Assembly: GCF_046119375.1 (NCBI RefSeq)
Contig: NW_027362765.1
Location: forward strand, 174,344,001 to 174,408,000
DNA length: 64,000 nucleotides
Direction of reading: 5' to 3'
DNA from: Phyllobates terribilis
Lineage: Eukaryota
The position numbers and the translations under genes are program-made. Numbering within the stretch: position 1 is the first letter of the stretch; the number at the start of each line of letters is the position of its first letter. Below, piece after piece: positions 5,901-43,585 of the stretch. The notes under the pieces were generated by a model. The model saw only the letters and a program-made list of their open reading frames with translations, ran no database searches and was not told where the DNA came from.

Positions 5901-7074
5901 ATGCTGACAGGTACAATTACCTGCTATAGAGAAATATTGAGTAGTCTAATCCCTTCTGGGACAAAAAAAAGTGGACTAAATATTTAACTCCTCTGTGACA
6001 GCTGCCCTTCATATACGGTGGTTGTGTGCCATCACAATATGGAGCGGGCTCAGGAGTTGCGTTTTCACCTTTAGTGTCCAAATCTATTGCTCAGTTTTCC
6101 AGAAATGGTTCTTTATTCAAATATGCTATTGAAGCGCTGTGTGCACGCTGGGCGTGGCTGGGCAGTGCAGTGCACCTTCCCACCTACTTGTTTTGCATCT
6201 AGAAATAGCAGTGAATTCATACCCTGCAGATTTTGCTGCTGAAATTCCTTAGACAGAAAAAAAAGGCTCCATTCATCTGAATAGGATGACTGCATAACTT
6301 TCGGCAACAAAATCTGCCCCATTCTTCCGCTATGCTCCATCCTATGTCCGGCTGTCTCGCTCTTGTTCCTGTGTCTTGTTCTACTGTCTATACGCTAGAG
6401 GGGGCAGGCACAGCTAGTGAAATAAACCATCTACAGCCAAGTGTCTGGTCACGTGCCAACACAAGAACTGCTGTCCTGTGTCAATCATGACCCCACGACA
6501 ATGGCGCCCAGAACTCGGGGTGAGAGGTGGAACATGGCCGAAGGCCCCGTTCAGTATTTGGTCTGTATTTTACCTCAGCATTTGTAAGACAAAACCAGGA
6601 GTGGGTAATAAATACAGAAGTGGTGATGTGTTTCTATTATACTTTTCCTCTGATTGTTCCACTCCTGGTTTTGGTTTATAAATACTGATGTAAAATACTG
6701 ACCAAATACTGATCGTAACAGTACGGCTACCAGCAGCTACAAATCACGCCTCCTAATGGTCAGCCATGTAATGTACATTATATATGGGAATATCCCTGCT
6801 CCTGGGTCACTCCACAACTAGGCAGGTCTGCAATACAGGATTCTGGGTGACAACATCTAGGCTACATCTAGTGTAATGGAGGTCACGACCTCTGACAGCT
6901 GGGTAAGATGCAACTAAGTATCTATGAATCCTAAAGCAGCCAGTGTTCAGGGCTTATAGACTGGAGCGTTTTCTTAGGTACAATTTCTCCAGCAGTGAAC
7001 TGGCCATAAATATCCCTTAACATGTACAACTTGCAAAATCCATAATCCTCTAGCCCTCGCTCGTCTCAGTCTCC

Positions 7075-7740
7075 AAAAACATGGCGGCGCGGCGCGGCCC
7101 TCTCCATGGAGTCAGCGAGAAAACATAGTGAGCGCTCTAGTGGATATCATGAGGTAACGCCCCTAAGCGCTACAGCCAATCACGTAGTGTTGCCGGAGCT
7201 TTCCTATTGGCTGCTCGTAGAAATTGGTGTTAGTGAACTGCACAAAAGCTGCACTTCCCAGAGACTCGGCACAACTTTACGTGACATGTAGGTGCAAGGA
7301 CAACTAGAAACATAGCGTAGGGAACCAAAAAGCATGTGATGGTTAAGAGCCTATTTCTGATTGGTTACTGGTAATGCCCATCAGGGTACTAATCAGCATG
7401 CTCATTGTTGATTGGCCCAATCGCTTGTCCATCTTCCAACGACCTATTGGCGATTGGTGGCTAACTGCGTCACTCCGTTGGGGGAAGCGGATGGTTGGCT
7501 ACGTCGCCGCAGGTTGGGGTAGGCGGAACACTGTGAGTTTCGGTGCGGGCTCGGTAACAGGATATGTGCTGGTAGATAACCGGTGAGTTTTGTGGCTTCC
7601 GGTATGTACGTGGGGATGGGACGGAAGCCGGGATTTGTTTTTTTTTCTTTCTCTTACCGGAGCAGGGTGGGGCTGATACAGGGTGGGCGCTTCCGGGGTG
7701 GGGCGGGACTGGTGTAAACAGGATGTTTTATATTGGGACA
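7075..7740 (+). promoter_or_regulatory. sp2: sp2 CpG-rich promoter and probable first exon
   Basis: CpG-dense. CCAAT/ATTGG at 7176, 7206, 7360, 7411, 7417, 7446 and 7453; YY1-like AACATGGCGGC at 7078; GC box GGGGCGGGA at 7700; candidate donors gtgagt at 7533 and 7583. Confidence 0.75.
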
Positions 7741-10139
7741 CTACAAGGGGAGAAGTGTGGGCCCAAGAGCTGACTATCAAACTTACCGGGGCAGAGACAC
7801 TGTCCTGCGCGGAGCAGCCGGGACCCGCATAATAACCCTCCACTTACACCCACAGCTGCACTGTGCAGTCCCATGTAACAGCTGCAGACGGCTCCAGGCC
7901 ATGGGGTCCTCTCAGCTGTGCAGCTGCCTGTCCTTATAGAGGGTCCAGTCACATCTGAGACCCCCAGAGAGGCGTCACTGTTAGTGGGGAGAGCAGAGTC
8001 TGTATGTGCTGCGCTGTTTTCGCCACCAAGACAGTAGGGACTATGGTGGAACCCTGTTGAGCGACATTAAAAGACAGTGGTGCCCGTCTTGCAGATCTGG
8101 AGCGGCGTAGGCTGAAGTTGTCCCTTTAACGAGCACCTATTGACCATACCTACACGTACTGTTTAAATTTACATATAGCTTGTATGGCAGCCGGCTCGGA
8201 CTGGCCCATAGGGGGCAGGTGAATCTCCCAGTGGGCCCTTCTGCATGCGTGAGCTCCCCATCCGCTATATGAACAAGTAGTTGGCACCTGTTTAACTATG
8301 TACTGACATAGAAAAACCAAAGACAAGCAAAATACGCAAGTAACTGGAAGTAAATGGGTACATCGCACGTGCAAAAATAATAAATAATGAAGGGTATTAA
8401 GTTAATTTTGATCAAAATAATGTAAAAGCTATCCCGCCACGTCACGGCAACCCTTATGGGACAGTCCTAACTCTAATATTAAAACCTTACTATTTGTCAA
8501 GTGACCTACATATGGATAAGGGCAGAGAGACTGAACCCCTAGTAGAAACATAGACCTGAAGCAGAACGAAAATTTCAGCTCAGACAAAGGGCGGCCACTT
8601 TTTTTTTTATGTACTGACATAGCCGTGTCTCATCATTGAACAGACTACCCAGTGCATTTTTATATAGAAGCAGAATTAGATTTGTGAATGAGCGTAAGGT
8701 AATATTTGCATGTAGCTGAACAGTGGCCCCCATTACCAATGCTACTGGGGGTCCCTTGACAGCCCTGTCCAACACAGTGTAGTAACATAAACAATCTGAT
8801 CACCCGACGAACATATTGGTCACCTGTGTATTCCTCTACAACATGTCTACAGCGACACCTCTACCTGGACCCTTAGTTATATTTTTTCCAGGACAACTGG
8901 GTGGTAATGAATATGGCCATCATGTCCTCCATGGGTTGTTATACAGCTCCCTAGACTGCAGACCTAACTAGTAGAGTTTGTTTGAATCGACCAGTAATCT
9001 GTGGCTGCTGGATGGGAGCCCTAAGAATCACCTACTGAAAAGCAGCAGTAGCTCTTCTTTTGATTAGCCGGCCTGGTATGATGGCGTGTCCCACATGTGA
9101 CATTGCGGCAGAAGAGCCACATATACTGTGAGATAGGAAACTGTTCTCAGGGTCACATCCTGCAGCCACGGATGAGACGTGATTGATGGACCAGATCCTG
9201 TGAATCGATTCACATCAACTCCACATAGGTATACAGGGACATAATCGCAATCGATTGCTACTAGGATTTCATAGAACTGCACTAGAGTTCAATCACCAGT
9301 ATGACATCTACTGATGAGGAATGAAATGGGGAAGGGAGGTTCTGCTCCTCCATACTCTGTGTTGTGCTGGGCTCATCATCCAGAGGGCCACTGTGAGCTG
9401 ATTGGCTGCAGCGTTCACATTTTGTCCAAGAGCAAGAAACACGATCACTGAATATCCTTTTTTTCCACTTTATGGGCCCATTAATAAAAGGTTGTTTAGT
9501 ACTGCACAATCCCTTTAAGCTGTGTCTAGCAAAGCTGGGTAGCAACCAATAAGGCTACAACAACCCCTCTTAGAGCAAAAGCATACAGGGTGGATTTTCC
9601 GTGCAGAAAATCTGCATATGACAGTAGAAACGTTCTGTGTGAGAGTTCACAAAATCTCATTCACATGCTGCATAAAAATGTCGACATCTAAGCATTTTCA
9701 ATTTGCAGCATGTCACTTATCCTGCGGATTCAATCTATTGCAGTGTATTTCCACCACAACATCTGCACAATCTATTGCAGATTTTGCCACTGTAGCCTTG
9801 CCAGGCTGCCGTCTGATTTCTACCTTCTAAATACCCATGTACAGGGGTGCTGTTTTTTTTTTATTATTTTAGTATTATTGATGCTATTTTTTTTCTGAAA
9901 GTTTTTTTTTTTTAATAGAAACAAAATAAAAAGAGAACTCTTCTCAGATTGTAAAAACAAATAAAACTTTATTTGTAATCTGCAAGTGTGGAGTTCCTGC
10001 AAATCTGTTTAGATTTTTTTTTAGATTTGTGACAATGAGACCAGATGAAGACAAATTAAAAGGTTGTCACCGGAAAGCAATTCTTTCTCTAAAGGCCGCT
10101 GCCCAGTCTAGCACCTGATTATTGCTAATCCATCTATAG

Positions 10140-10660
10140 CAGGGTTGTCAAACTCAAACACACAGAGGGCCAAAATGAAAAACTTTGACAAAGTCACGGG
10201 CCAACCAGTATACAGTATAATGGGCCCCACATAGTCCACCATACAGAATAATGGCCCCACATAGTCCTCCATACAGAATAATGGGCCCACACAGTAGTCC
10301 GTACAAAATGATGGGCACCACACGGTCCTCCGTACAAAATGATGGGCACCACACGGTCCTCCGTACAAAATGATGGGCACCACACGGTCCTCCGTACAAA
10401 ATGATGGGCACCACACTGTCTTCCGTACAAAATAAAGGTCCCCACACAGTCCTCCATACAGTATAATGGGCTCCATACAGTATAATGGCCCCACATAGTC
10501 CTCCATACGGTATAATGGGTCCCACATAGTCCTCCATACAGTACAATAGGCCTCACAAAGTCCTCCATACAGAATAATGGCCCCTCATAGGGGTGATGGT
10601 TCTGGTGTCGCGGGCCAAATATAATCATGCTGCTGGCCAGATTTGGCCCACGGGTCAGAG
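10140..10660. mobile_element. hAT-like non-autonomous element with an internal 31-bp minisatellite (10210-10580)
   Basis: Starts cagggttgtcaaact...gggcc; unit gtcctccgtacaaaatgatgggcaccacacg; right end degenerate. Confidence 0.6.
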
Positions 10661-13133
10661 GACTCCCGATCAGCTGGTATTGCTGGATGTTACACTATGT
10701 GGTCATACATTACAATGGCTGCTTCATGGGAATTTTAGGGTATGTCCACCTACGCTGGAAATGCTACAGATTTTTAAAAGTAGATTACAGTAGCAGACAT
10801 GTAGGAGAGATCTGAACAAATGTCATCTACATGTTGTAGGGGTTTTTTTTTGCATGGAAATGACCTATAGTGTGGATTTGTATATCCATGACATGTTAAT
10901 TTCGGTTGTGGATTAATAAATCTGATTTCAGCTATTCAATTTGCCACAAATCTGCAGCTATTTTTTTGCCATTGGTGGGCCAGATCTTCGTATCACAGGA
11001 TGATCTTGGCTTTCCATGGTTTTTCAAGGAGCATGCTCAGTGGAGGACCATCCCTTTAATTGTCCATGTGCTCTAACAGAGTATGGGTCCTCTTTGAGAC
11101 GACTTCTTTTGACAGCAGAAGTATTCAGATATGCACAGGTTGGATAAGGCTACATTCCCACATAGTGTGTCAGTGTCCTAACCTGTCTCGGCAACCTTAC
11201 ATATGTTTATGAGGCTGTTAAAGGCGGTCCTCCAGGCTTGTTGATCAAGTCTGCAGTCACTCAAGTGACTACAGACTTGTGAATCCTTACAGCGCGCAGT
11301 CAGGATTCTCCGTGTGATTTGCTTACTTCCGGCTACATTCCGATTCTAGATGTGTGCAGCCTCGCTCAATTCACTTGTATTGAGTGAGACCACTGGATGT
11401 CTAGTCTACACGTGAACCCATGTATGGATATCGCATACTTGCGATTACTCGCCCCTCCACGCCTGGAACAGGAGAATTCTGACAGCGTGCCCTGTGCGCA
11501 CTGTGAGGATTCACCAGTCTGCAGTTACATAGAGTAACTAGAGCCCCAAGCCTGGAGAACCCCTTTAAGTTTTGGTTTGAAGACAAGCCGCCAGTTCGTG
11601 CATCGGACCGTGACACTAATGTGTGAATGTATCCTAAGACTAGATTTTATCTATGCATCCAGTGGCCTGAAATGCAAGATCACCAGCAGTTTAGCTTATG
11701 TTCGCTTGTAACAAGTAAGTCTCCGTTCACACTATCAGTATTTGGTCAGTATTTTCCCTCAGTATTTGTAAGCCAAAACCAGGAGAGGAACAATCAGAGG
11801 AGAAGTATAATAGAAACTCGTCACCACTTCTGTATTTATCACCCACTCCTGGTTTTGGCTTACAAATACTGAGGTAAAATACTGACCCAATACTGAACGT
11901 GTGAACGTGGCCTAGTACAGAAAATGTCACCACAACCTGCATGATAATACATATGGCTTTGTCTGTCTAATCAGCTTTATATAAGGGGGAGTTATAGCAG
12001 AAACCTGGAGCTCTCCCTATGAAGTGGGATGTAATATCACATATAAACGGCTGCCGTGGTTCCCATTGTGCAGGCTTCCTCACTTATTTATATGAGTTAA
12101 TAAATGTCTTATATTTTAGGTTTCTGATTTTGCTTGTTCTTCAGTAAGAGGAGAAATTCTGGAATGTCAGTATTTAGCTCACGAATAGATTTATTATATG
12201 AGAAGACCTTGTGAAGAAAACCCAGCCTTTGAGATGATCCAGCTCCATTGCATCTACTAGACTCTTGTTGTGTAGCGTAAAGGTCAGTATCACAGCCGTA
12301 CCATATCTGTGTGTCCCTTTATACTTAGTCCTGGACTTCCTGCTCCAGTAATCTTTGTTTTGCTGTACTTCTTATGTCAGGTAGTGTTGTACAGTCCTTG
12401 CTGTACCCGGCGCGTACACTCTGTACAGTTTTGTGCTGTACTCTTGTACTCCCTGCAGACTTGTCAGTGCAGCTTTAGGACCGGATATAAGAAATTGGTA
12501 ATTGTGGTCTGATACTGGACAAATATCGCAATATATTTATAAAGTTTCTCAATTTTTTTAATGGAAATTATTTCTGTATTGAAATTGTAAGATTGTGTTT
12601 AAAGGATCAATTAAAGGGGACCGGTCATGTCCAGAAACTATGTATCTGCAGATAGATATAGGGGTAATCTGCAGGTTAATAGTTTTTATATCCACTTTGT
12701 CCGGGTACTGGAGCAGCGGTGAAAGTAAGTGTTATTCTCCCTGCAGCCACTCGTTTCCAGTCATCAGGGCAGTGAACCCCTGTATTTTGATTGACAGCGT
12801 GCTCCACACACATACCCTGCAGATCAGGCTGTCAAACTGCCGGGGAGTGATTACAGAGCTTACCGATCCCTGCACCGCCCTGGTGACTGGAAGCGAGCTA
12901 CTGCAGGGAGAATAAAACGTCATTTTCTCCCTGTAACCAAGCTTCCAGTATGTTGGCTACACAGGATTTAAATGTGATTTACCTACAGATTACCCCTATA
13001 TAAGGTTGAAGATGAGATTTATAATAGATATTTCTCTGCTCCAGTTTATATAAGCACAAACTGGCAACATAGAAATGCCTATTTGCTATTTGTGTAATTA
13101 ATAACCTATTTCTGCCATTCTGTATAGTTCATT

Positions 13134-13196
13134 ATGACTGCCACTGCTGCAGTGAGTCCCAGTGAGTACCTGCAACCTGCTGTCTCCGCTGCTCAG
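13134..13196 (+). CDS. sp2: Sp2 coding exon (N-terminus MTATAAVSPSEYLQPAVSAAQ)
   Basis: Matches the SP2 N-terminal MAATAAVSPSDYLQPAASTTQ; acceptor tag|13128, donor cag|gtaagt, phase 0. Not in the ORF track because it is short. Confidence 0.9.
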
Positions 13197-13668
13197 GTAA
13201 GTCTGCTTTTATAGATGTGATTGTAGAAAAATGACAGAACCCATGGTTGTCTATGTCAATGGGCTGTAGACAAGTTGTACAAAAGTCTTAAATCACATTC
13301 TCGAGTGTGTATATACCGGTACGCATATGTATGTGTATGGATACATGATCCAGTTTTCCCCATCAAAGTTAATCTATCACTCCTGATCCCAATTGTCCAT
13401 CCACTGCACCAAACATTCTGAGAATTTTACGCATTTACATAATTATTTGTTATTTTATGCTAAAAATGCATCTAAGCCCTTTTTGAAACAATCAATGGTT
13501 ACCACTGTGACCAGCTCCTTAGGTGGAGTATTCTTATGGTAAAGAAGCCTTGTCTCCTTAGGAGGTTGAACCTTTCTCCAGATGGAGGGAGGGAGTGCTC
13601 CTTCATCTCTTTACGGGGTTTAACATGATACAGATTTAGATAATTTCTTTATATGGATCATTTTTATA

Positions 13669-15263
13669 CAGTGGCTACGGAAAGTATTCAGACCCCTTTA
13701 AATTTTTCACTCTTTGTTTCATTGCAGCCATTTGGTAAATTCTAAAAAGTTCATTTTTTTTCTTATTAAAGTACACTCTGCACCCCATCTTGACTGAAAA
13801 AAACAGAAATATAGAAATGTTTGCAAATTTATTAAAAAAGAAAAACTGAAATATCACATGGTCATAAGTATTCAGACCCTTTGCTCAGGCACTCATATTT
13901 AAGTCACATGCTGCCCATTTCCCTGTGATCCTCCTTGAGATGGTTCTACTCCTTCATTGAAATCCAGCTGTGTTTAATTAAACTGATAGGACTTGATTTG
14001 GAAAGGCACACACCTGTCTATATAAGACCTCACAGCTCACAGTGCATCTCACACCAAATGAGAATCATGAGCTGAAAAGGAACTGCCCAAGGAGCTCAGA
14101 GACAGAATTGTGGCAAGGCACAGATCTGGCCAAGGTTACAAAAGAATTTATGCATTACTCAAGGCTCCTAAGAGCACAGTGCACTCCATAATCCTTTAAA
14201 TAGATGAAGTTTGGACCACCAGAAGTCTTCCTAGACCTGGCTGTCCAACCAAACCGAGCAATCGTGGGAGAAGAGCCTTGGTGAGAGAGGTAAAGAAGAA
14301 CCCCAAGATCACTGTGGCTGAGCTCCAAAGATGCAGTAGGGAGATGGGAGAAAGTTCCACAAAGTCAACTATCACTGCAGCCCTCTATCAGTCGGGTCTG
14401 TATGGCAGAGTGGCCCGATGGAAGCCTTTCCTCAGCGCAAGACATATGAAAGCCCACTTGGCGTTTGCTCAAAAACACATGAAGGACTCCCAGACTATGA
14501 GAAATAAGATTCTCTGGTCTGATGAGACGAACATAGAACTTTTTGGTGATAATTCTAAGCGGTATGTGTGGAGAAAACCAGGCACTGCTCATCACCTGCC
14601 CAATACAATCCCAACAGTGAAACATAGTGGTGGCAGCATTATGCTATGGGGTGTTTTTCAGCTGCAGGGACAGGACGACTGGTTGCAATTGAAGGAAACA
14701 TGAATGCGGCCAAGTACAGAGGTATCCTGGATGAAAACCTTCCAGAGTGCTCTGGACCTCAGACTTGGCCGAAGGTTCACCTTCCAACAAGACAATGACC
14801 CTAAGCACACAGCTAAAATAACAAAGGCGTGGCTTCAGAATTGACCATTCTTGATTGACCAACCAGAGCCCTGACCTAAACCCAATTGAGCATCTCTGGA
14901 GAGACCTGAAAATGGCTGTACACCAACGTTCACCATCCAACCTGATGGAACTGGAGAGGATCTGCAAGGAAGAATGGCAGAGGATCCCCAAATCCAGGTG
15001 TGAAAAACTTGTTGCATCATTCTCAAGAAGACTCATGGCTATACTAGCTCAAAAGGGTCTGAATACTTATGACCATGTGATATTTCAGTTTTTCTTTTTT
15101 AATAAATTTGCAAAAATGTCTACATTTCTGTATTTTTCAGTCAAGATGGGGTGCAGAGTGTACTTTAATGAGAAAAAAAAAGAACTTTTTAGAATTTACC
15201 AAATGGCTGCAATGAAACAGCGTGAAAAATTTAAAGGGGTCTGAATACTTTCCGTACCCACTG
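13669..15263 (+). mobile_element. Tc1 element (DD34E type), degenerate, in the sp2 intron before the large exon
   Basis: TA|cagtggctacggaaagtattcagacc ... tccgtacccactg|TA; ~200-bp TIRs; frameshifted transposase (WSDE, NPIE). Confidence 0.93.
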
Positions 15264-15401
15264 TACTTGTACAAGTTGTTCATTTTTTCCCCTTAGACAT
15301 ATCTTCTCAAGACTAAATAAATGTAATTATTTTAACCTTCCCTCATAACCAAGAGCCTTCATGCCCCTTATCAGTTTTGTGGCTCTTTGTACCTTTTCTA
15401 A

Positions 15402-16025
15402 AGGCCCCGTCACACTAAGCGATGCAGCAGCGATCCCGACAACGATACGACCTGTCAGGGATCGTTGCTGCATTGCTAATACATCGCTGGTGAGCTGTCA
15501 AACAGGCAGGCTCACCAGCGATGAGGGGAGCAGCGATATCGTGGAAAGAATCGTTCCACGATGTCCTGCTCCCGTTACCAGCCTGCTGCAAGCAGGAGCA
15601 GGCTGGTAACTATGGTAAACATCGGGTTACTAAGTGCGCGTGTGCCCCTAGTAACCCGCTGTTTACCATGGATACCACTCTGCTACGGTGCGCGGGAGCC
15701 TCTGCGCACCGTAGCAGAGTGGTATCCATGGTAAACAGCGGGTTACTAAGTGCGCGCGTGCCCCTAGTAACCCGATGTTTACCATAGTTACCAGCCAGAT
15801 CGTTGGTCCCGCTGGTCACACACAGCGATGTGTGCTGGCCAGCGGGAGGCCAACGACCAAAAAATGGTCCAGGACACTTTGCAACGATCAGCGACCTCAC
15901 AGCAGGGGCCTGATCGTTGCAAAGTGTCACACACAGCGACATCGCTGGTGAGGTCGCTGGTGAGTCACCAAAACCGTGACTCAGCAGCGATATCGCTAGC
16001 GATATCGCTATGTGAGACGGGGGCT
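15402..16025. mobile_element. PIF/Harbinger-like MITE with long internal inverted repeats
   Basis: TIRs ggccccgtcacac / tgtgagacgggggc flanked by TAA-like sites; fold-back interior. Confidence 0.7.
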
Positions 16026-16149
16026 TAACTCTAGGCCATCCTTTCTATGAACTGATGCACAGAATGGAACTGCATATTCTAGATGAGGTCGAACTAATGC
16101 TTTGTAAAGTGGTAGTATTACATCCCTGTCTCTCAAGTTCATACTTCTT

Positions 16150-16785
16150 TTAAAGGGGTTGTGCCACCATAAAGAATACATTTAACCAAGCAGAAAAGGA
16201 GTAAATAAATGTTTTTGTAATTTACAGTTATTAAAAATTCAAAAAATACCAAGCTTTTATCTTTTGTAGTATGCCCTCTGACGTTATGCTACCTCACAGA
16301 TTTGACAGTGCAGGGAGCGTATTGCTGAAAGTCTTCCCACCCCCCCTTACTCCCCTGACCTCTGGGTGAGATCGTTCGGCTTCATAGAGCTGTGTGTGTG
16401 AGCACGGGAAGCCTCTCTCTGCAATTGCACTCACACAGGTCTGTGGTGATCTCACCCGGGAGGGGGGGGGTCACTGACATGTATCCATGCTTCCTCAGCA
16501 ATATGCTCCCTGCACTGTCAGACTTGTGAGGGAGAATACGTTGTGCCCACTGGGGGTGGGGAGTTGGGGGAACCTCTTATGTTGACAGGAACTGTGCAAA
16601 CTGGCCAGCTGATTGGCCACTGGGAGGACGGAATGGAATAACGCCAGGGAGCATACTTCAGAAGATAAAAGCTTGGTATTTTTTGAATGGAGCATATTTT
16701 TTAATAACTGTAAATTGCAAAAACATTTATTTCCACCTTTTCTGCTTGGTTAAATGTATTCTTTATAGTGGCACAACCCCTTTAA
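16150..16785. mobile_element. TTAA-type (Kolobok/T2-like) MITE
   Basis: TTAAaggggttgtgccac ... gtggcacaacccctTTAA, with TIRs of about 110 bp. Confidence 0.8.
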
Positions 16786-17691
16786 TACATCACAGTACCC
16801 TGCTGGCCTTAGAAGCCACGGATTGACTTTTCATACTGTTATTTAGTCTGTGGTCTACAAGTACACCCTGATCCTTCTATACAAGTGACTCTCCTAGTTT
16901 TACTACACTAGAACATATGGCGCTCGAATGTTATTAGTGCCCATGTGCATAACTTTAAAGAGAACCTGTCACTAGGTTTTTCTCATATAACGTATGGCCA
17001 CCACCATTAGGGCCCTTTTAACAGCATACTGGAATGCTGTAAAAAAAAAAAATTAAATAAAAAAAATAATCCCCAATATAGTCTGCAGATCCCAAAAAAT
17101 ATTGCATTATACGTTACCACCTGTTTTGGACACTGTCTGTTTCTCTCATGCTTATAGTGCTGTACATAGTCCCTTACAGGCGCCTTGAACGGCTTTTCCA
17201 CAATGCATTAACCAGCTTACTGGGCTATAATTACCTGGGAAAGACCTGAAAATGGGCACCACATAGGTTTTGAGCCATTTGCTTGGTACAATATCATATC
17301 AAAAATTATGCATAGGGGCCCAGCAGGACTGAGCAATATTTGTAGTATGATATAATGAAGGGTATTTCCTTGGGGCAGTATATGGAAGTAAGGACTTTCT
17401 GTGACTCCGTACTCCAAAGCTATAAGCATTCTATGTACCACCATATTAATCATGTATACTCAGCTAGAGTCTAGGGGAAAATATCTCTAGAACATATGAC
17501 TTTTTTATAATATGTAAGAACCTGACATAAAGGTCTTGAATAAAATCTGTGGCATAGGCAGTGGAGGTGTGCTTTATATAACTCGGGCTGCAGAGTGTAG
17601 TGTATTGGCATACATGAGCCTGTCAGGGTTGTTCTTGTGTCCTGTCTCTTTACCATGTAACAAGGCATCTGTGTTTTATTCACCCATCTAG

Positions 17692-18555
17692 GACACACAG
17701 CCTTCTCCTCTGGCTCTCCTGGCAGCCACATGCAGTAAAATTGGTCCTCCTGCTATTGAAACAGCTGTGACTACCCCTGTACCACAACGACCAAGTCGCA
17801 AAAGGTTGATACCTATAAAGCCTGCACCATTACCAGTGAGTCCCGGAAAAACAAGTATAGGACTTTTAAATGCCAAAGGGAATGTGATCCAAATTCCACA
17901 ATTGGGGACAGGAAACGGGCAGCTCTTCTTCACCATACAGAACCCAGGGGGTAAGGCCGGACGCTATCAAGCTTTGCAGACTTCTCCTCAGGCAGTTCCA
18001 CAGACTCTGGGCACTCAGTTTCAGATTATTAGTCCTAATGATGGTGGCACGACCCTTCAGCTTACTCCACACTCCAGTTCTACAAAACATGTGCCCATAA
18101 AGCCTGCCCCTCCACAGAAAAACAGCAGTGTTATGAAGTTGACTGGAACTGCTGGCAACAACCTCACTTTGGCACTGCCTCTCAATAATCTGGCAGACAG
18201 CTCATCTGAAATCTGCAGTCAACTTGTTCATAGCAGGCAGAGTAAAAAGCCTCGTAAGAAGCCCCTGCCACCAGGGCCGACACCTGGCTCTCCCACCCAG
18301 GAGCAGGTGGAGACTGTAGTCATTGAAACAACTGCAGACAATATCCTCCAAGCTGGAAACAACCTGCTGATTGTCCAGAGCCCCAATGCAGGTCAGCATG
18401 CTGTATTACAGCTTGTACAGCCCAAAGCGGAGACACAGCTGGTGCAAATACCACAACAGGCACTGAGAGTGGTACAAGCAGCCTCCGCTACACTGCCAAC
18501 AGTGCCACAAAAGCCAGTACAAACTGTCCAGAGCACAGAAGCTTTTCCCACACAG
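17692..18555 (+). CDS. sp2: Sp2 large exon: Sp box and Gln-rich region (288 codons)
   Basis: DTQPSPLALLAATCSKIGPP (Sp box), PIKPAP motifs and EQVETVVIETTADNILQAGNNLLIVQSP; ag|17692 and cag|gtatga; phase 0/0. Confidence 0.97.
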
Positions 18556-32868: not shown

Positions 32869-33033
32869 TATGTAATAATGTTTGCAGTTTGTATTGTAAA
32901 ATCTAGTGACCAATCCAATTGCAGTGTCTTTTTTGCTGCATAAAATGGACAAGGTGTCACTTTGTGCCAAATTCTTTTGTTATACTAAATGCAATTATGT
33001 AGCCATTATAGTCAAACTTACAAATCAACCAAT

Positions 33034-33039
33034 TTTATT
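33034..33039 (-). terminator. Probable polyadenylation signal of the BEN gene
   Basis: AATAAA on the minus strand about 125 nt past the stop codon. Confidence 0.4.
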
Positions 33040-33162
33040 TGTGTTAAATTTACAGACATCAAAGGAACATGCATATTAATGCCTCCAGTCAGTTTGTGTC
33101 ACCTCTGGTCACTGCAGCAAAGGTTGCTTTGGATACCTTTATAATGTCCTTTATCAGGTAGT

Positions 33163-33455
33163 TTAAAACAGCGTTTTACAATTGGTTGTCTGATCATCTG
33201 TAACTTTGTCCTGTGGCACGTCCTCTGTGATTAATCTCTCTGTGGCCTTTGTTCCAGTGACTGTTGCCTTATCATTGGCAGACTGTAGCCTCTGAGCTGC
33301 TGGTTTGGATATAGGTTTGGGGCAGTGTTTAGTGCCTCCTTCAGTCCAGTCGATACGTATGGACATCTTTTTCACGGCCCTTCGAGATGTGCCACATTTA
33401 CTGTTTATAACTGCATTGAAGTTACAGCCACGGCCACAAGCTCTTGTTACATAGG
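33163..33455 (-). CDS. BEN-domain gene, last coding exon (BEN C-terminal helix and tail)
   Basis: Acceptor ttttccag|, phase 1; AYVTRACGRGCNFNAVINSKCGTSRR...CKTLF*. Confidence 0.85.
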
Positions 33456-35206
33456 CTGGAAAAGAAAGAAGGAGAATATAAAAGTACATTTAGCAATGAT
33501 CTAACAGATTTAAATGTACTTTGTGAAGTTGTGTGTTTTATGTTACCGCATTGGATCCAGTTAGATTTTTTCAGAAGCTTAGAAATGTAAAAGCTGAAAA
33601 AGACAAACCCACACCCCACCCCAAAAAAAGGATGTATTGTCCCGTTTTGTTTTTCTCCAATACATGTTGAACCTCTTAAAGACCAGATTTTCTGTTTTTT
33701 TCGTCCTTTTTATTTTCCAAGAACCATAACTTTTTTAGTTTTGTCGACAGTCCTATGAGAGCTTGTTTTCTTGTTGGGACAATTGGTCTTGAATGAGCCT
33801 ATTCATTTTATCTTATGTACTATTAAAAAAATGGAAAGAGTTTAGCTTTTGATACATAGTTTTAAAAAAAAATATTTTGATAGATCGGTATTTTTATGGC
33901 TTTGACCATACCAATTTTTTTTTATGTATTTTTGAACTAGGAAAAAGGGGATTAAACGTTTTTTTGAGTAATTTCTAAACTTATTATTATTTATCTTTTA
34001 GCCCCCTTGAACGTAAACCAATATTACAGTATACAGTGAAATTACGGTTCTATGATGGGCTGGATTTCAAATCAAGACAAAGATGGCACTGACGCAGCCT
34101 TCAGTAAGTTCCTGTCTGCCATGGTGACCCTTCAGTTACCCGTGACCGTGTGCGGATTGCAGCTGGTGCATGCGCACATCATCAGACAATATATTTATTC
34201 AGTGATCACTGCTGTTTAATTAAATGCTGCTGACAATCAGAGCAAGCTTTGGCATCTGCCCGGTATAGAACAAGTGCAATTCCTCAGCCCACTCCATACA
34301 CGACCTGTGGCGAAAATATACAGCACAGGCTAAGTGTGCCAGACCAACAAAAGGCAAATTGTCACCGTACTTTTAGACATCATCACCAATCACAAATTTA
34401 TAAATTATGTTGTCTCACCCCTGAAAAAAAAATCACTTTAGAGTGCTGGCCACTAGGCGTCTTTCGGTCTACCTTGCTGACTTTTGTCAAGTTTTATCCC
34501 TCTCTAGCTGTTGAGACAGATTACAGGTAATGGGGGCAGATCTTCATCTATGCTCCTGCTCTCCTGTCTGTTAGGCCACGGCCCCACTACCAGTATTTGG
34601 TCAGTATCCGTATTTTTTCTCAGGAGTGGGAGCCAAAACCAGGTGAGAAACAATCAGAGAAAAGGTATAATTGAAACAAGTCACCAATTCTGCATTTATC
34701 ACCCACTCCTGAGAAAAAATACTGACCAAATACTGATAGTGGGCCCGTGGCCTTACACTACATATAGACATAACAGAGTGGTGGGCTTTCAAGTGGGAGC
34801 AGGCAAAGACAGACGCAAGCCTGCTAAGAAATGAAGAAAATGAAGTTCCTACACCTGTAGTGCTGGCAGAATACTGAAGAGGATCCACTAGTTAAATAGA
34901 GATGGCGAGTTAAAAAAGCAAGAAAATGTGGACAGTTCCTGGACATGTTAGAATAGAGTATGTATAAAAAGATTTTGAGGGGATGAAGGTAGGAAGACCA
35001 TGTTGTTTTGTAGGTTTTGTGTGAAAGGGCTGGTATGCTGTAACAGTCATAATCAACTGTGTATATGCAAGTATTTAACCGACCATACACAGTTCAAGAT
35101 AGCTCAGTAAATAGCAAACAAATGTACAGTGTTTCACAACTTTAAATACTAAAATAACTACTAAATAATTGCAGAGGACCTCTTTAACATGCGGGGGGCC
35201 CCTCAC

Positions 35207-35453
35207 CTTTGATAGCAGTTACCACTGTATCGGGCAAACGTAGGGGTTTTTCCATGGTGGTATTATTATGTGCAATCCGCTGTCCTGTGGCAGAAGATCG
35301 CGCCAGGGTCTCCCTAGAGAAGAAGTAATCCAGTAGACGCCGGGTCATTAGCTTGGGTTTATCTGGTGGAATGAGAGAGAGGTCCTCTAGCTGCTGGTAT
35401 GTGATATACACGCCAGATGCTGGCACCAGCTCCAGTTTAGGACGTCCATTACT
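35207..35453 (-). CDS. BEN-domain gene, exon encoding the BEN core
   Basis: SNGRPKLELVPASGVYITYQQL...KLMTRRLLDYFFSRETLARSSATGQR...VVTAIK; tttag|, aaag|gtgagg; phase 0/1. Confidence 0.9.
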
Positions 35454-35581
35454 CTAAACATAGAGAAGACACAAATTAAACTCCCACATTATACTTATAA
35501 GAATACATAATTTGGTACGTTTGCAGACCAAGGAGCTAGAGAGTGGGGCTTTACAAATTATATATATATATATATATACAC

Positions 35582-35890
35582 CTCTATTGGCGAAGCCCAT
35601 GCTGGAGTCCCGTCTGGCAATATTTCTTGTAAAGGTTCCTCCCATAACACACAAGATTCAGGTATTGTGTTCTCTCCACCATCATCCATCTTCATCCAGT
35701 ATTGGAAGCCACTTGTCACCCCGGTGACCCGCAGCATGCCATCTGCAGGGGTGCTGGTCACTTCATTTGGTGGATTTGAATGGTCAGGCTCTGGTGTTTG
35801 TGGTGGAATAGGGGATGCCACTCTTTCTGCTGAGGGAAGCTTGCTTTCACTCAACTGAACAGGGGTAGATGAAGCTCGAGGAGGGGAGGG
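35582..35890 (-). CDS. BEN-domain gene, Pro/Ser-rich linker exon
   Basis: ttttttctag|CCC ... gag|gtgtat; 309 nt, open, phase 0/0. Confidence 0.8.
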
Positions 35891-36426
35891 CTAGAAAAAA
35901 GACCATTTTTAAACTGTACCATGTAACAGAGATCTGTCACCAGATTTCACAATACAAACTGTATACGTTCTTAAATAGTTCTATTGGACATGAGGGTGGT
36001 GTACTTACTTTGAAAACCCATGTACGAATGGCTGCATCATCCTCTTTTAAATGTAAACTCATTCTCAACCCACTTAGCCTGATTGGCAATTTCTCATTTT
36101 ATGATCAGATAAGCTTTCAAAAATCTCTGAACAACCATTTTAATGTTGGTATTCAAAGTACTTACCCTAGACCGGATGAGGCTGGTGTAAGCATTTTTAA
36201 TATTGATGTTAAAATGGCTGCATGATCCTTTTTGAAAGATTTCCTGTCTCATCATAACCTGATCAATCAGGCTAGGTGGGCAAAAAAAGATTTAAAAAGA
36301 TTATACAGCCTAAATATGATTTAAAAAAAAAATAATAATAATAATAATAATAATTACACCAGCCTTTATCTAGTAACAGATCCACTTTAACTGGAATGGC
36401 AACTTGGATTTGAGAATTTTAAATAC

Positions 36427-36497
36427 CTGTGATTCTGAATTTGTCTCCAGAAATCCTGCCAAGTTTTTCAAGAAGGAGACATTGCAGTCACTGACCA
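36427..36497 (-). CDS. BEN-domain gene, 71-nt exon (VVSDCNVSFLKNLAGFLETNSESQ)
   Basis: ttttcag| and cag|gtattt; it supplies the phase 1 to phase 0 change that the neighbouring exons need. Confidence 0.75.
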
Positions 36498-37859
36498 CTG
36501 AAAAGTAAACAAATATGTGTTTTTCAATATCTGAATTCTTTTCCAAGCCAAATAAAGGATTAATATGAAGGAAAATCCTATGTTTTTTTTATTTTAGGAG
36601 CAGTGGTTTGTACCCTAGTTCTGCTATTCTCTCTGTGAGTCTGCACTTAACAGCTGTAACGACCATTTTTGTTAGAATCTGCATTACATCTCAGAGACCT
36701 GGACCCCACGTTAGCACAGCGAGTTGAACTGGGTTCATGACATAATTCCCATATAATTCTATAGCACTTCAATTTTCATTTTAACTTAACCCCAGAAGCC
36801 CCAGTGTTCTGACCCTCAAATGGATGGTAAAATGAAGCCTAAATAAGGACACCATAATAATTTTTTACAATTTTCAGGTTTCCCCCCTGCAATTGAGTAA
36901 AAGTTGTCTGTGTTAATCGTGTAATAGTACCTTTTTGTTACTTGAATTGAAACACAAAGGAAACACCCATGTAACCCAAGTGCTAGAAGTGTAAATTCTC
37001 CTCCTTATACCACATTAAAGGAGTTGTCCTGCCTTAGGATACAAGTCTGTAGTCACTATACGACTGCAGACTTGTTAATCCTCACATTGTGCGTACTACG
37101 CGCTGTGAGGATTCTCAAACACCGTGAGTGAGCGGTCATGTGAGCACAAGTATGCAATTTGAATACTTTCAGCAACATTCCGACTAGACGTGTCCAGCCT
37201 GGCTCAATACACTTGCACTGAGCGAGGCCGTGCACATCTAGTTGGCATGTTACCGCATACTTGTGGTCACTCCATCGCCACTAGAGGATCTTTACAGCAC
37301 ATGTGATGTGAGGATTCACAAGTCTGCAGTCACGTTGAGTGACTGCCGACTTGTAGCCTAAAGGCGGACAACTCGTTTAAGACATGGTGGAGTTAATGCA
37401 CATTTTGTGTAGAATAGCAACAAGGTTCAGCTCAATACACATGAATGAGATTTTCACACATACTCTCCATTGACTAATCAACACAAGACAATTAACATTT
37501 TTGGGGAAATTCAAATTCATAGATTACCCTACAATACAGTTTTATTTGCTCTTTTCCATTAATAGAGCAACTACACTTTTTTCTTGTCATACATCAACAG
37601 TATCAGTGAAGCTATAATCCATCTTCAGTGAGGGATCAAATTACAGCTGCTGCCTAGAGAAAGCTATGGAGAGGAGAAAAGGGCAGAGCACCAAAAAGAA
37701 GCTGCTGTGGCTCCTAGTGCCTTAAGGCTGCAGGATACAAGTCATATGTATGGGTATGACCTCACGTACACACACAGGACAACTTACTCTAAAAAGGTGG
37801 TTATACTTTAAGGAGTATGAAATAAATTCATATATTTGCTGATTTTAAAGACCTCTCAC

Positions 37860-38338
37860 CCACAGACTGACCATCTGGTCCCATGAGACGATCACCTTCT
37901 TTTATTGCACAGATTCCTCTACGAGACAAGGCATCATTCTGCTCCTCCAATGTCTGAACATGCCTTCTTAGTTCTTGATTCTCTTTCTCCAGTTCTTGGA
38001 TTCTCCATTCCTGCACTTCAGCAGCTTCATCTCGAGAAGTCAAAATTTGATGCAGTTCTGCAATCTGTGCCTCAAGCTCCCGCGCTAACTCTGAATATAG
38101 CACAGTAACCCGGCTTCCTGACCGTGCACTCCAGTGGTGTCCACTAGGACCTTGGAGACATCCTGCGTCTCTGTTTGAAAGACTCCGATCATGCTCATTA
38201 GTTCTTTGAACGTCATGTAAAGTGGTAGTGTGGTGCCAAGGAATTGTGGTCGAGCACAGAGGTCCATTCAAGGTTCTCTGACGTTTCCTGGTGGAAAAGT
38301 CCTCTTCGGATTTGTGCAATATTGATGAAGACAAACAT
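37860..38338 (-). CDS. BEN-domain gene, coiled-coil exon
   Basis: ttctag|, gtgg|gtgaga; basic RKRQR patch and heptad stretch LARELEAQIAELHQIL...IQELEKENQELRRHVQTLEEQNDAL; phase 2/1. Confidence 0.82.
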
Positions 38339-38418
38339 CTAGAACATCCAGACAGAAGCATTATTACGGTCAAAGGCAACATCTCTAAGATCTACCACAT
38401 TTTATCTTTTCCATTTAC

Positions 38419-38522
38419 CTGCCTGTGTGTGCAGCTCCATCTTGCAGACCCTGTGTAGGCACATTATTGAGCGTGCTGTCTGACTCTTCTTGCCTGTGTT
38501 CAGGTTCTTCACAACGGTTCAT
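38419..38522 (-). CDS. BEN-domain gene, first coding exon (MNRCEEPEHRQEESDS...)
   Basis: Exon acceptor tttcag|38566, in-frame TAA upstream of the ATG at 38522, donor cag|gtaaat, 80-nt intron. The total CDS is 1503 nt = 500 aa plus stop. Confidence 0.7.
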
Positions 38523-41500
38523 CTGTTTTATCTTGAGTGGTCTTCGCAAAGATACACTTTAGTGACCTGAAACAGACAGATGGGAAATGAAAGCTGTGAT
38601 CATATGAAGAAGACAGCCTTGGAAAATGATGTTTGCTACTGACCAATACATGGTTCAAAGAGGAAAAATAAAAATCGCATCTGTAAAAAAGGTTGTTTCA
38701 TGAATTATTTGGATTCCACATGCTGTTAAAGGGAACCTGTTAGGTCTGGATTCCCTATTCGTGATGAGCGAGCATGCTCGTTTAACCCTTTAACTGAGCA
38801 GGCTTGGGTGCTTACCGAGTATCTTCGGCGTGCTCGTATATTATGTTCGAGTCCCTGCGTCTGCATGATTTACGGCTGTAAGACAGGCAATCCTCACATG
38901 TGTTGAGGCTGCCTAACAGCCATAAATCATGCAGACACAGGGACTCGAACATAATATACAAGCACGCCGAAGATACTCGGTAAGCACCCGAGCATGCTTC
39001 TCCCCACAGATGCCGCCTCTTGATTGATGGCAGAGACATGCTCTTCTACACGGCATCACGTTTGGCCTCCACTGTCATCAAAAAGCAAAGTCTGCTCTGG
39101 CAGGTTCAAGTGGCCCAACAAAACCGTTGAGCAGAGTGCTGTTTAAATGTAAACCTAGCCTAAATCTGTTTATAATTATTACAATCCCCCAATGTATATC
39201 TCACATGCACAAATCAGCCAAAATGGCCACCACTAAGGTTTGGTTCAAGAGCTAGCACTCTTACACTATATGCACTATTACAGGCAGATTCCATAAAAAA
39301 CAGCACCCCATAAAATGCACAGCAATGTCAAAAGGGCATTGCTGTGCACACATTCCATCTTGCGTCACATCTTTTAGCAACTTCAGAGTTCTGGAAACCC
39401 TGAAGTGGTTAAAAGAAGTGACATGCTCATCCTTAAGGCATATAGTTGAAAAAAAAAATACATGTGGCAAAGCTGCCTTAAAAATGACACAAAGGGTATG
39501 TGCACACGATCTGAAGCCGCTGCGTGTTATGCAGCGTCAAACCCGCAGCGACCAGATGTTACAGCATAGTGGATGGGAGTTCTAGAAATCCCATGTCCAC
39601 TATGCGTCTCTGTGCACCTGCGGATCACCCGCGGAAACTGACTTGCGGCGTGTCTTCTCAGACTGCAGCATTTCAATTTCTTTTGTGGGTCCGCATGTGG
39701 CTTTCCCCATAGACCTATCCTCTATGATTAAAGTCCGTAGGTGAAAAAAAAAAAATGGTGCCGCCTATATGCATAATGAGTGGAAGCCGTGCGGCTATGC
39801 CGGAAAGTCGGGGGCTAAAGCCAGCTCTGGACAGTGAGCACTTACCCTAAAGACGCCAAAGAAAGTACTTTGGGAAAAACACCGCCGGTTTTCCCTGATC
39901 TGTCTTCTGTATCAAAAATAAGGCGGGTGTGACAGCGTCTAAAAGATGCTGTGTGCACTTAAACTTAGGGCTCTTTCACACGTCAGTATCTCCAGTACGA
40001 GTGGTGACAGTTTCCACAGGTACTGGAGAGACTGACACAAGCAGACCCATTCAAATGAATGGGTCTGTGCACATCTCAGTGTGTTTTCACGGACCGTGGG
40101 TCTGTGTGCTCCACACGGAGACAAGTCAGTTTTTTTGTGGATACATGGTAAGCAAAACATACCACACCCGTGTGTCATGTACCTGCGCCTGGGAATCAAT
40201 GCTACAGTTAGCACTGTTCCCAAGTGCCGGTGCTGAACACTGCCCTCATCATAGTTCCCTGCTGGTGCTGCGTTCAACACCAGCAGGGACAATGATGAGG
40301 GTAGCAGCTTCGGAGCGGCTCATTCTCCCAGGCTCCTCGGCAGCAGTCGTGTGGATTACAGAGGGGGACACCTAGGAGAGGGGAGTACATGGATTTTATT
40401 ACTTTATTCTTATTTTTACACAGGTGGACACTGGGAACAGACACCACTACCCTCATCATTGTCCCTGCTGGTGCTGATCGCAGCGCCGGCAGGGAACCAT
40501 CATGAGAGCAGCGTTCCGCACCGGCGTCTGGGAACAGCGCTAACTGTACCGCTGATTCCCAGGTGTCTGTCCGTTTGATCCTAATGCGGCACACGGGACA
40601 CTGATATCTCCGGTAACAATTTTTCCGGTACAGGAGATATACGGACGTGTGAAACCGGCCTTAGGCTGGTTTCACTCATGAGTTCGTGCTGGAGCCATTT
40701 TTGGTCCGTTTTTACAATCCATGTTATAACTCGTATCATGATATTAGGGCTATCCATTACTTTTCACAAGGCCACTTACTTGCAGTGGCAAGTTTGAACC
40801 GCAACACAAATTAAAGTAGGACCTGTCTCTGTATTTTGTTTTTGCACCCCCACAAAAAAAAGGAAGTGTGAAAAGGCAAATTCATTGTAATGGGTCCATG
40901 ATCTCTCTGTAAAAATAACAGCGCAAGTACAAGAAAAATGACGCGTGAAAGAGCCTGAACTGAAGCCTTCCTGTAAGGGCTCTTTTATACATCAGATTTT
41001 TAGTGCGTGCCAGTTGTTATTTTGACAGATAGATCATGAGCCCATTACAATCAATAAGTGTTTTCATGTCTATTTTGGAGGACCGATTATACGGAAAAAA
41101 ACGGAGACGTGCCAATGCAAGTCAATGGCTGAAAAAAAAAAAAAAACAGCACACTTATGTCATCGGAAAGCTGTCCGTATTTTACTGTTTTATGGGTGTG
41201 AGAAGAATTTTGTTTCATGCAATAAGAGAAAAATTTATGCAACAAGAACTGCAAAAACTGACACATGGACCAAGAACGGGTCTAGCACACAGAAAAAAAA
41301 CAGACATATGAGAACATAAAGACGTCTGAAATCGGCCGTCCTACCTCTCACTTCTTTCCACACAATCAAACTTAGCACATGGATTCGTTTAAGAACTCAA
41401 GACAGAACTTAAGAAATGTAGTTTAATATGATGAAAACAGCCACAATGCTAAATTAATACAAAAAGAAGAAAACAAATGGAAAAGTGCAAACACGTCCCT

Positions 41501-43464: not shown

Positions 43465-43585
43465 CTGACATCACTGGGAAGTTTAGTAGCGCGGCCATTC
43501 CTGTCCTTCTCCAGCGCTGACTCCTCACGTGACTGATCACATGACCGTGACATCACGCAGGTCCTTTCTCCTACTGGAGCCTAGC
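43465..43585. promoter_or_regulatory. Compact bidirectional promoter region (BEN gene on -, pnpo on +), including a probable non-coding first exon of the BEN gene
   Basis: CpG-rich; minus-strand donor tcag|gtaatg at 43464; TCACGTGA at 43525 and TCACATGA at 43537; pnpo ATG at 43586. Confidence 0.6.

Follow-up and report, generated by a model that had tools for sequence, protein, structure and literature searches.

A BEN-domain gene with a coiled coil beside pnpo in Phyllobates terribilis has unnamed relatives from sharks to marsupials

Humans have nine BEN proteins, BANP, BEND2-7, and NACC1/2 (PMC11472053). NACC1 and NACC2 (BEND8 and BEND9) are transcriptional co-regulators that carry a BTB/POZ domain together with the BEN domain. 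BEND5 and BEND6 are vertebrate BEN-solo proteins, with an N-terminal coiled coil, one C-terminal BEN domain, and no other known domain. The Drosophila repressor/insulator proteins Insensitive (Insv), Elba1 (Bsg25A), and Elba2 each have a single BEN domain, and sequence-specific DNA binding by these proteins has been described in published work. Here, we analyze a minus-strand gene of the frog P. terribilis, located between sp2 and pnpo in a stretch of 64,000 nucleotides (nt) of contig NW_027362765.1 (positions 174,344,001 to 174,408,000; hereafter the window, to which all coordinates refer). Its product is probably a conserved nuclear BEN-solo protein, a dimeric DNA-binding regulator belonging to a family apart from the nine human BEN proteins.

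The gene itself is certain from its structure, transcription, splicing, BEN fold, purifying selection, phyletic spread, and synteny. Its coding exons (104 + 479 + 71 + 309 + 247 + 293 = 1503 nt) encode 500 amino acids with one terminal stop; all introns are GT..AG, and the window is free of N. The spliced translation (P0145) equals, residue for residue, NCBI XP_073539600.1, an “uncharacterized protein isoform X1” of P. terribilis (GCA_046119375.1), and the gene called by NCBI spans 5360 nt, exactly from 38522 to 33163. The intact six-exon open reading frame (ORF) proposed by a first-pass annotation, made from the sequence alone, is thus correct, and the RKRQR patch, coiled coil, Pro/Ser linker, and BEN domain that it described are all present. 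It had also called the gene probably uncharacterized. This holds in that databases give the gene no name and no paper on it was found, but the gene model is not new: it is already in NCBI for this frog and for roughly 60 other species, and in Xenbase as XB5788060. The transcript is organized as follows.

Exon 1, about 43465..43517, minus strand: noncoding (5′ untranslated region, UTR), from the 5′ UTR of frog complementary DNA (cDNA) contig L001 and the X1 RNA contig.
Exon 2, 38419..38566, minus strand: remaining 5′ UTR, ATG (38522-38520), and 104 coding nt (38522-38419), from an RNA joint.
Exon 3, 37860..38338, minus strand: 479 nt with the RKRQR patch and the coiled coil (residues 108-182), from AlphaFold and RNA joints.
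Exon 4, 36427..36497, minus strand: 71 nt with a short helix, N-x-x-F-L-K-x-L-x-G-F-L-E (residues 198-216), from alignment, AlphaFold, and RNA.
Exon 5, 35582..35890, minus strand: 309 nt with the Pro/Ser linker, then the pre-BEN segment (LRV-GVTSGFQYW ... LPDGTPAWASP), from the orthologue alignment.
Exon 6, 35207..35453, minus strand: 247 nt with the N-terminal strands of BEN, α1-α3, and the α3-α4 loop with Arg380, from Pfam and a PDB match.
Exon 7, 33024..33455, minus strand: BEN α4-α5 (recognition helix INSKCGTSRRAVKK), C-terminal tail, stop (33165-33163), and 3′ UTR, from an RNA contig; its coding part is 33455-33163 (293 nt).

The upstream end of exon 1 (43517) is a minimum; the donor GT of this exon lies at 43464-43463 (minus-strand letters GTCAG/GTAATG). 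Position 38566, given as the upper limit of the gene in the first-pass annotation, is the acceptor of the first coding exon. The X1 contig terminates at 33024, and an AATAAA is located at 33039-33034, which places the 3′ end near there.

Transcription was followed in Logan contigs of four runs, aligned to 32900-38700. One run is from P. terribilis itself and matches exactly; the other three are from related species, and their contigs show scattered exon differences from the window. Spliced joints are found at 33455/35207 (four of four runs), 35890/36427, 36497/37860, and 38338/38419 (three runs; in the fourth, the joint is displaced by a few letters), all with plus-strand CT..AC, i.e., minus-strand GT..AG. 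The 35453/35582 joint is missing from the joint table because a (TA)n run at 35550-35589 was skipped in read placement; the contig coordinates leave exactly the 8 to 10 letters that are needed. The donor of the 309-nt exon lies directly next to this run. Reads are also cut at a (TTA)n/T-rich run (36316-36364) within the next intron upstream of that exon. Word depth in X1 is 256 in exons versus 0 to 17 in non-repeat intron stretches. L001, a cDNA contig of another frog (84% protein identity), is collinear with all exons. Its 5′ UTR aligns to 43517-43464 and then resumes at 38570, and the X1 RNA contig extends 67 nt beyond 38570; therefore, a noncoding first exon is placed at about 43465-43517. 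Spliced mRNA is thus found in five frog species, four from the runs and one from L001, and the junctions predicted by the first-pass annotation are those of an expressed gene. Residues 191-194 are missing from NCBI isoform X2 and residues 183-194 from X3; these deletions, just after the coiled coil, match alternative in-frame GT donors (37872 and 37896, respectively) in the 479-nt exon. One organism-D contig begins exactly at 37872, which hints at the use of this donor there too.

BEN (PF10523) is the only family that exceeds its Pfam cutoff in P0145. The match covers residues 357-424 and profile positions 2-76 of 76, with 47.9 bits versus a cutoff of 23.2 [expectation value (E) of 1.6e-12]. 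Exon 6 alone matches Pfam BEN with E 3.7e-9 and the NACC1 BEN domain in PDB with E 1.8e-8. Coiled-coil families match residues 118-172, all below threshold, and no BTB domain was found by Pfam in P0145 or in the opossum and shark orthologues. An intron splits the BEN domain after the Lys of AIK, and the same split is seen in the loon Gavia.

The full-length AlphaFold model contains a single helix at residues 108-182, with a predicted local distance difference test (pLDDT) score of 91-97 over 111-170, and a second helix at 198-216. A coiled coil followed by a single BEN domain (here, residues 357-424) is the layout of BEND5/6, as had been proposed. The coiled coil, of ~75 residues, is leucine-zipper-like: in the register with Leu151 at “d,” the “d” positions are Leu123, Leu130, Leu151, Leu158, Leu165, and Leu172, and the “a” positions include Ile127, Leu134, Ile148, Asn155, Val162, and Asn169. 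Both asparagines are invariant in 63 orthologues. Asparagine at “a” positions of leucine zippers favors parallel dimers, and the Leu151/158/165/172 series with Asn155/Asn169 would be expected to form such a dimer here. The basic patch RKRQR (residues 52-56) is a probable nuclear localization signal that would direct import into the nucleus.

The BEN domain is poorly modeled in the full-length structure (pLDDT 44-81). A second model, built for residues 268-445 from a trimmed alignment, reached a predicted template modeling (pTM) score of 0.66 and a core pLDDT of 82-96. It has a BEN fold with two N-terminal strands and five helices, the C-terminal α5 being the recognition helix. When this model was searched against PDB structures, all of the top 17 matches were BEN domains, mostly in DNA complexes, with template modeling (TM) scores by target of 0.47 to 0.81. 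The best superpositions were with the Drosophila proteins (Bsg25A 4x0g, TM 0.81; Insv 4ix7, 0.80; root-mean-square deviation of 2.6 Å), followed by NACC1 (8yzs, 0.68-0.73, 31-34% identity) and then BANP, BEND6, and BEND3. Identity to Insensitive/Elba is 21-24%, and their N-terminal regions differ from that of the frog protein; no orthology is implied.

Two further features of the domain were observed. Cys410, Cys414, and Cys424, all invariant, together with His383 surround the α4-α5 loop (residues 405-424; 33385-33453, minus strand). The stretch YVTRACGRGCNF matches PRDM9 zinc fingers with E 2.8e-5; this is probably a chance match, since there is no His pair, although a role in metal binding or disulfide formation is conceivable.

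The ratio of nonsynonymous to synonymous substitution rates (dN/dS) was calculated by the Nei-Gojobori method for the window coding sequence against the L001 cDNA (dS of 0.39). Such a comparison had been suggested as a check in the first-pass annotation. The overall value of 0.21 indicates purifying selection, and the values differ by region.

Residues 1-108, N-terminus: dN/dS 0.45.
Residues 109-175, coiled coil: dN/dS 0.088.
Residues 176-218, short-helix region: dN/dS 0.026.
Residues 219-268, Pro/Ser linker: dN/dS 0.84, near-neutral.
Residues 269-321, pre-BEN segment: dN/dS 0.02.
Residues 322-445, BEN domain: dN/dS 0.014.
Residues 446-500, C-terminal tail (window 33163-33330): dN/dS 1.04, near-neutral.

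A search for orthologues with a caecilian BEN region as the query returned 98 related proteins, all of them unnamed or generically named. They come from six sharks, the coelacanth, about 30 frogs, two salamanders, three caecilians, turtles, an alligator, the tuatara, lizards, some 25 birds, and marsupials; the opossum cluster adds marsupials, bringing their number to at least nine. Absent from the matches are placental mammals, monotremes, snakes, galliform and passerine birds, and ray-finned fishes; as only annotated proteins are covered, this absence is not proof of loss. The first-pass annotation had supposed that the gene was retained in amphibians and perhaps other non-mammals and lost in mammals. 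Retention outside mammals stands, with a wider range that takes in sharks, the coelacanth, reptiles, and birds. Loss in mammals does not, since marsupials keep the gene; it is placental mammals that appear to have lost it, and the gene is also unseen in monotremes and ray-finned fishes. Xenopus members of the family are XB5788060 and X. laevis LOC495228, for which there is a GenBank protein record derived from cDNA. The orthologue from the caecilian Rhinatrema bivittatum (P0035) shares 92% identity with the Microcaecilia BEN region, and BEN is its only Pfam domain. NCBI names it “cyclin-dependent kinase 12-like,” which looks like an annotation error.

An extension, MSIRIDW-x-EGG, follows the BEN domain in frogs, salamanders, and caecilians, and the tail that continues past KKMSIRIDW-x-EGG is found in amphibians only. 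In sharks, the coelacanth, and most amniotes, the protein ends within a few residues of the BEN domain, typically with a short VKME-like tail.

The gene occupies the same chromosomal slot in distant species. Its neighbors in Phyllobates are a PNPO-type oxidase gene (divergent) and a gene for a 561–amino acid C2H2 zinc-finger protein (convergent). The order in the loon is CDK5RAP3, PRR15L (Pfam ATAD4), PNPO, the BEN gene, and a gene for a 595–amino acid zinc-finger protein; the opossum has the same order from PRR15L through a 654–amino acid zinc-finger protein. By size, Pfam families, and synteny, an indirect identification, the zinc-finger neighbor is probably SP2, so that the placement between sp2 and pnpo made in the first-pass annotation applies to the loon and the opossum as well. 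The loon and opossum gene order is that of human 17q21.32, where SP2, SP2-AS1, PNPO, PRR15L, and CDK5RAP3 follow one another (PMC10045734). SP2-AS1, a long noncoding RNA (lncRNA) gene, is the only one listed between SP2 and PNPO in human (PMC10045734), in line with that annotation, which had no coding gene there. The loon BEN gene has six coding exons with boundaries aligned with those of the frog.

These data bear on whether the locus might be a lineage-specific BEN ORF derived from a transposon or virus, or a decaying gene that merely seems intact. BEN domains are known in viruses and mobile elements (PMC11472053), and introns of the gene carry palindromes resembling miniature inverted-repeat transposable elements (MITEs) with very high RNA word depth. 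However, the gene has one copy, in a syntenic location, in each of frog, bird, and marsupial, its intron positions are common to frog and loon, its orthologues go back to sharks, the BEN dN/dS is 0.014, and spliced mRNA is present in all five frog species. Both origins are effectively refuted.

We next consider how the BEN domain relates to the named ones. A phmmer search with residues 315-445 against all PDB sequences matched NACC1 (E 1e-11) and Insv (6.6e-3); BEND6, BANP, and BEND3 were not among its matches even at E 10. BEND6 was matched in PDB with a profile (E 5.9e-4) and not with the single sequence; we prefer the single-sequence result, since the profile is biased to NACC1 by three NACC2 rows in its alignment. 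An exhaustive HMMER search of 1.84 billion representative proteins with the 247-nt BEN exon yielded 30 matches at E ≤ 1e-3. They comprise orthologues, a few invertebrate proteins, unnamed short fragments, and then NACC2 (E 4.5e-5 to 3.9e-4), as well as one 797–amino acid repetitive protein with eight short matched stretches; BEND2-7 and BANP are absent among these 30. Foldseek against Swiss-Prot models ranked NACC2/NACC1 at the top (24-28% identity), followed by BEND7 (20%), Insv/Elba (19-21%), BEND5 (13%), and then BEND4, BANP, BEND2, and BEND6. As the first-pass annotation had suggested, NACC1/2 are the nearest named BEN proteins, and the Pfam check that it had called for identifies the BEN domain without BTB. 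In a search by language-model features, BEND5 clusters ranked directly after the protein’s own cluster (score of 0.93), while an atlas search with exon 6 alone returned generic BEN clusters only.

The gene might accordingly be viewed as orthologous to, or a diverged copy of, a named BEN gene, either NACC1/NACC2 without the BTB exons or BEND5/BEND6. The rankings above speak for NACC in the first case, and the layout and the language-model clusters speak for BEND5/6 in the second. In a maximum-likelihood (ML) tree of the BEN core, however, three NACC2 sequences are set apart by a branch of 2.55 changes per site (support of 100/100), compared with within-tetrapod branches of 0.01-0.07; opposite NACC2, all vertebrate members form one group with Lingula, Argopecten, and three unnamed proteins. 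The named BEN proteins in this tree are the three NACC2 sequences; for BEND2-7 and BANP, the HMMER and Foldseek rankings stand in. The frog protein has a coiled coil where NACC1/2 have BTB/POZ, and NACC1/2 have another chromosomal neighborhood. Identity to the BEN domains of BEND5/BEND6 in structure alignments is just 13-17%. Xenopus has its own BEND5 (Q3B8D4 in X. laevis) and BANP entries, and therefore the BEN gene is neither. Not one of the 98 relatives carries a gene name, and the slot beside PNPO and SP2 is conserved. Descent from a named BEN gene is thus very improbable.

Two invertebrate proteins, Lingula LOC106173933 (brachiopod) and Argopecten XP_069137448 (scallop), share a VINSKC-x-T-x-RR helix and an A-H-N loop with the vertebrate family; this INSKC-type helix is not found in NACC, which further separates the family from NACC1/2. 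Over exon 6, they are 44 and 51% identical to the query, respectively. Both are shorter and equally uncharacterized, and the Lingula protein additionally has a coiled coil and an F-L-x-x-L helix. A word-indexed search with the Lingula protein returned itself as the sole match. NACC orthology, a transposable element–derived ORF, and a pseudogene were all rejected, on the tree and BTB absence, synteny, selection, and spliced RNA.

The mode of DNA recognition by the closest named protein is known. NACC1 reads CATG through Asp462, Thr465, and Arg469 of α5 and the minor-groove Arg421 of the α3-α4 loop; it contacts phosphates through Arg468, Ser423, Arg429, and the main chain of Gly419-Ile420, and the R469A substitution almost abolishes binding (PMC11472053). 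The corresponding residues of the frog protein were taken from the HMMER alignment to 8yzs_A (offset 338).

NACC1 Gly419: Gly378.
NACC1 Arg421: Arg380.
NACC1 Arg468: Arg428.
NACC1 Arg469: Arg429.
NACC1 Asp462 (base-reading position): Ser422.
NACC1 Thr465 (base-reading position): Gly425.
NACC1 Ser423: Ala382.
NACC1 Arg429 (phosphate contact): Glu389, invariant.

Gly378, Arg380, Arg428, and Arg429 are invariant in 63 orthologues, and all eight aligned positions are invariant or nearly so. The α5 helix, NAVINSKCGTSRRAVKK, is identical in coelacanth, frog, bird, and marsupial; its NACC counterpart is IAADMCTNARR. The conserved Arg380, Arg428, and Arg429 suggest that the BEN domain would bind DNA sequence-specifically, and the use of α5 and the α3-α4 loop for reading is likely common to this protein and NACC1/2. 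Of the CATG-reading set Asp462/Thr465/Arg469, Arg469 alone is kept. Since Ser422 and Gly425 occupy NACC1 base-reading positions, the target motif is probably not the ACATGT of NACC. The DNA-binding scaffold thus appears to be kept with different base-reading side chains, and the protein probably recognizes a conserved motif other than ACATGT.

Several observations weigh against a DNA-binding regulator. Two phosphate-contacting residues of NACC1 are replaced, by Ala382 and Glu389; the α3-α4 loop that holds Arg380 has low confidence in the models; the linker and the C-terminal tail evolve at near-neutral rates; and BD1 of BEND3 is a BEN domain without specific DNA binding (PMC8887127). Instead, the BEN domain could be a protein-interaction module and the protein an adaptor or scaffold, e.g., one that bridges corepressors via the coiled coil. 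A role of BEN domains in recognizing proteins, and not DNA alone, has been proposed (PMC8887127 and, going by its title, a PICH-BEND3 paper). The acidic residue at a phosphate-contact position and the two changed base-reading residues would fit such a role, and three more conserved modules outside BEN suggest partners. However, the three arginines most important for DNA binding by NACC1 are invariant, α5 is unchanged between coelacanth and marsupial, and each of the closest structures is a BEN domain on DNA whose helices have the same geometry. We therefore regard an adaptor or scaffold as rather unlikely and favor a DNA-binding regulator. From the features described, we infer that the protein is nuclear, dimeric, and DNA binding and has a regulatory role; by analogy with other BEN-solo proteins, it might act as a repressor or at chromatin boundaries.

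The gene is a tenth ancestral vertebrate BEN family. The vertebrate set has been taken as the nine human proteins, and no human, mouse, or zebrafish orthologue was found, while galliforms, the group of the chicken, are absent among the bird matches; this would explain why the family has gone unstudied. A literature search retrieved no paper on XB5788060, LOC495228, LOC100494818, LOC103101315, or LOC102361767, and publications on BEN-solo factors, BEN evolution, eutherian gene loss, and SP2-AS1 included none describing this gene or the origin of SP2-AS1. The Xenopus orthologue XB5788060 makes the binding motif, targets, and loss-of-function phenotype directly testable, and the conserved recognition helix, unlike that of NACC, could add an entry to the BEN DNA-recognition code.

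Exon 1 lies head-to-head with pnpo, about 25 nt from the start codon of the latter (43541, plus strand). The coding starts of PNPO and the BEN gene are 1.0 to 1.3 kb apart in loon and opossum. This spacing points to a conserved bidirectional promoter. It is tempting to speculate that human SP2-AS1 is a transcribed relic of the gene: an ancestral BEN transcription factor of jawed vertebrates would have become a unitary pseudogene in the placental stem, with a noncoding RNA kept via the bidirectional promoter of PNPO. We put this forward tentatively, as a possibility on the doubtful side. The position of SP2-AS1 fits, and its orientation appears to fit. Support for the link in the literature is positional; a differentially methylated region has been assigned jointly to PNPO/SP2-AS1 (PMC10403495). 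At this well-known locus, placental mammals thus offer a case of apparent gene loss, with a candidate lncRNA relic.

Two palindromic elements are located in the introns. The last coding intron contains a 189–base pair (bp) near-perfect hairpin (34569-34757) with 39-nt arms that are 92% complementary and inner 36-nt arms. Its word depth in same-species RNA reaches 7,000-17,800, with opposite-strand joints; the element resembles a MITE of very high copy number, with transcription from some site in the genome. A second palindromic element, of ~366 bp (37015-37380) and with 48-nt and 26-nt inverted arms, is found in the intron that separates 37860 from 36497; its word depth is ~1,100 in X1, and it occurs in the runs of related species as well.

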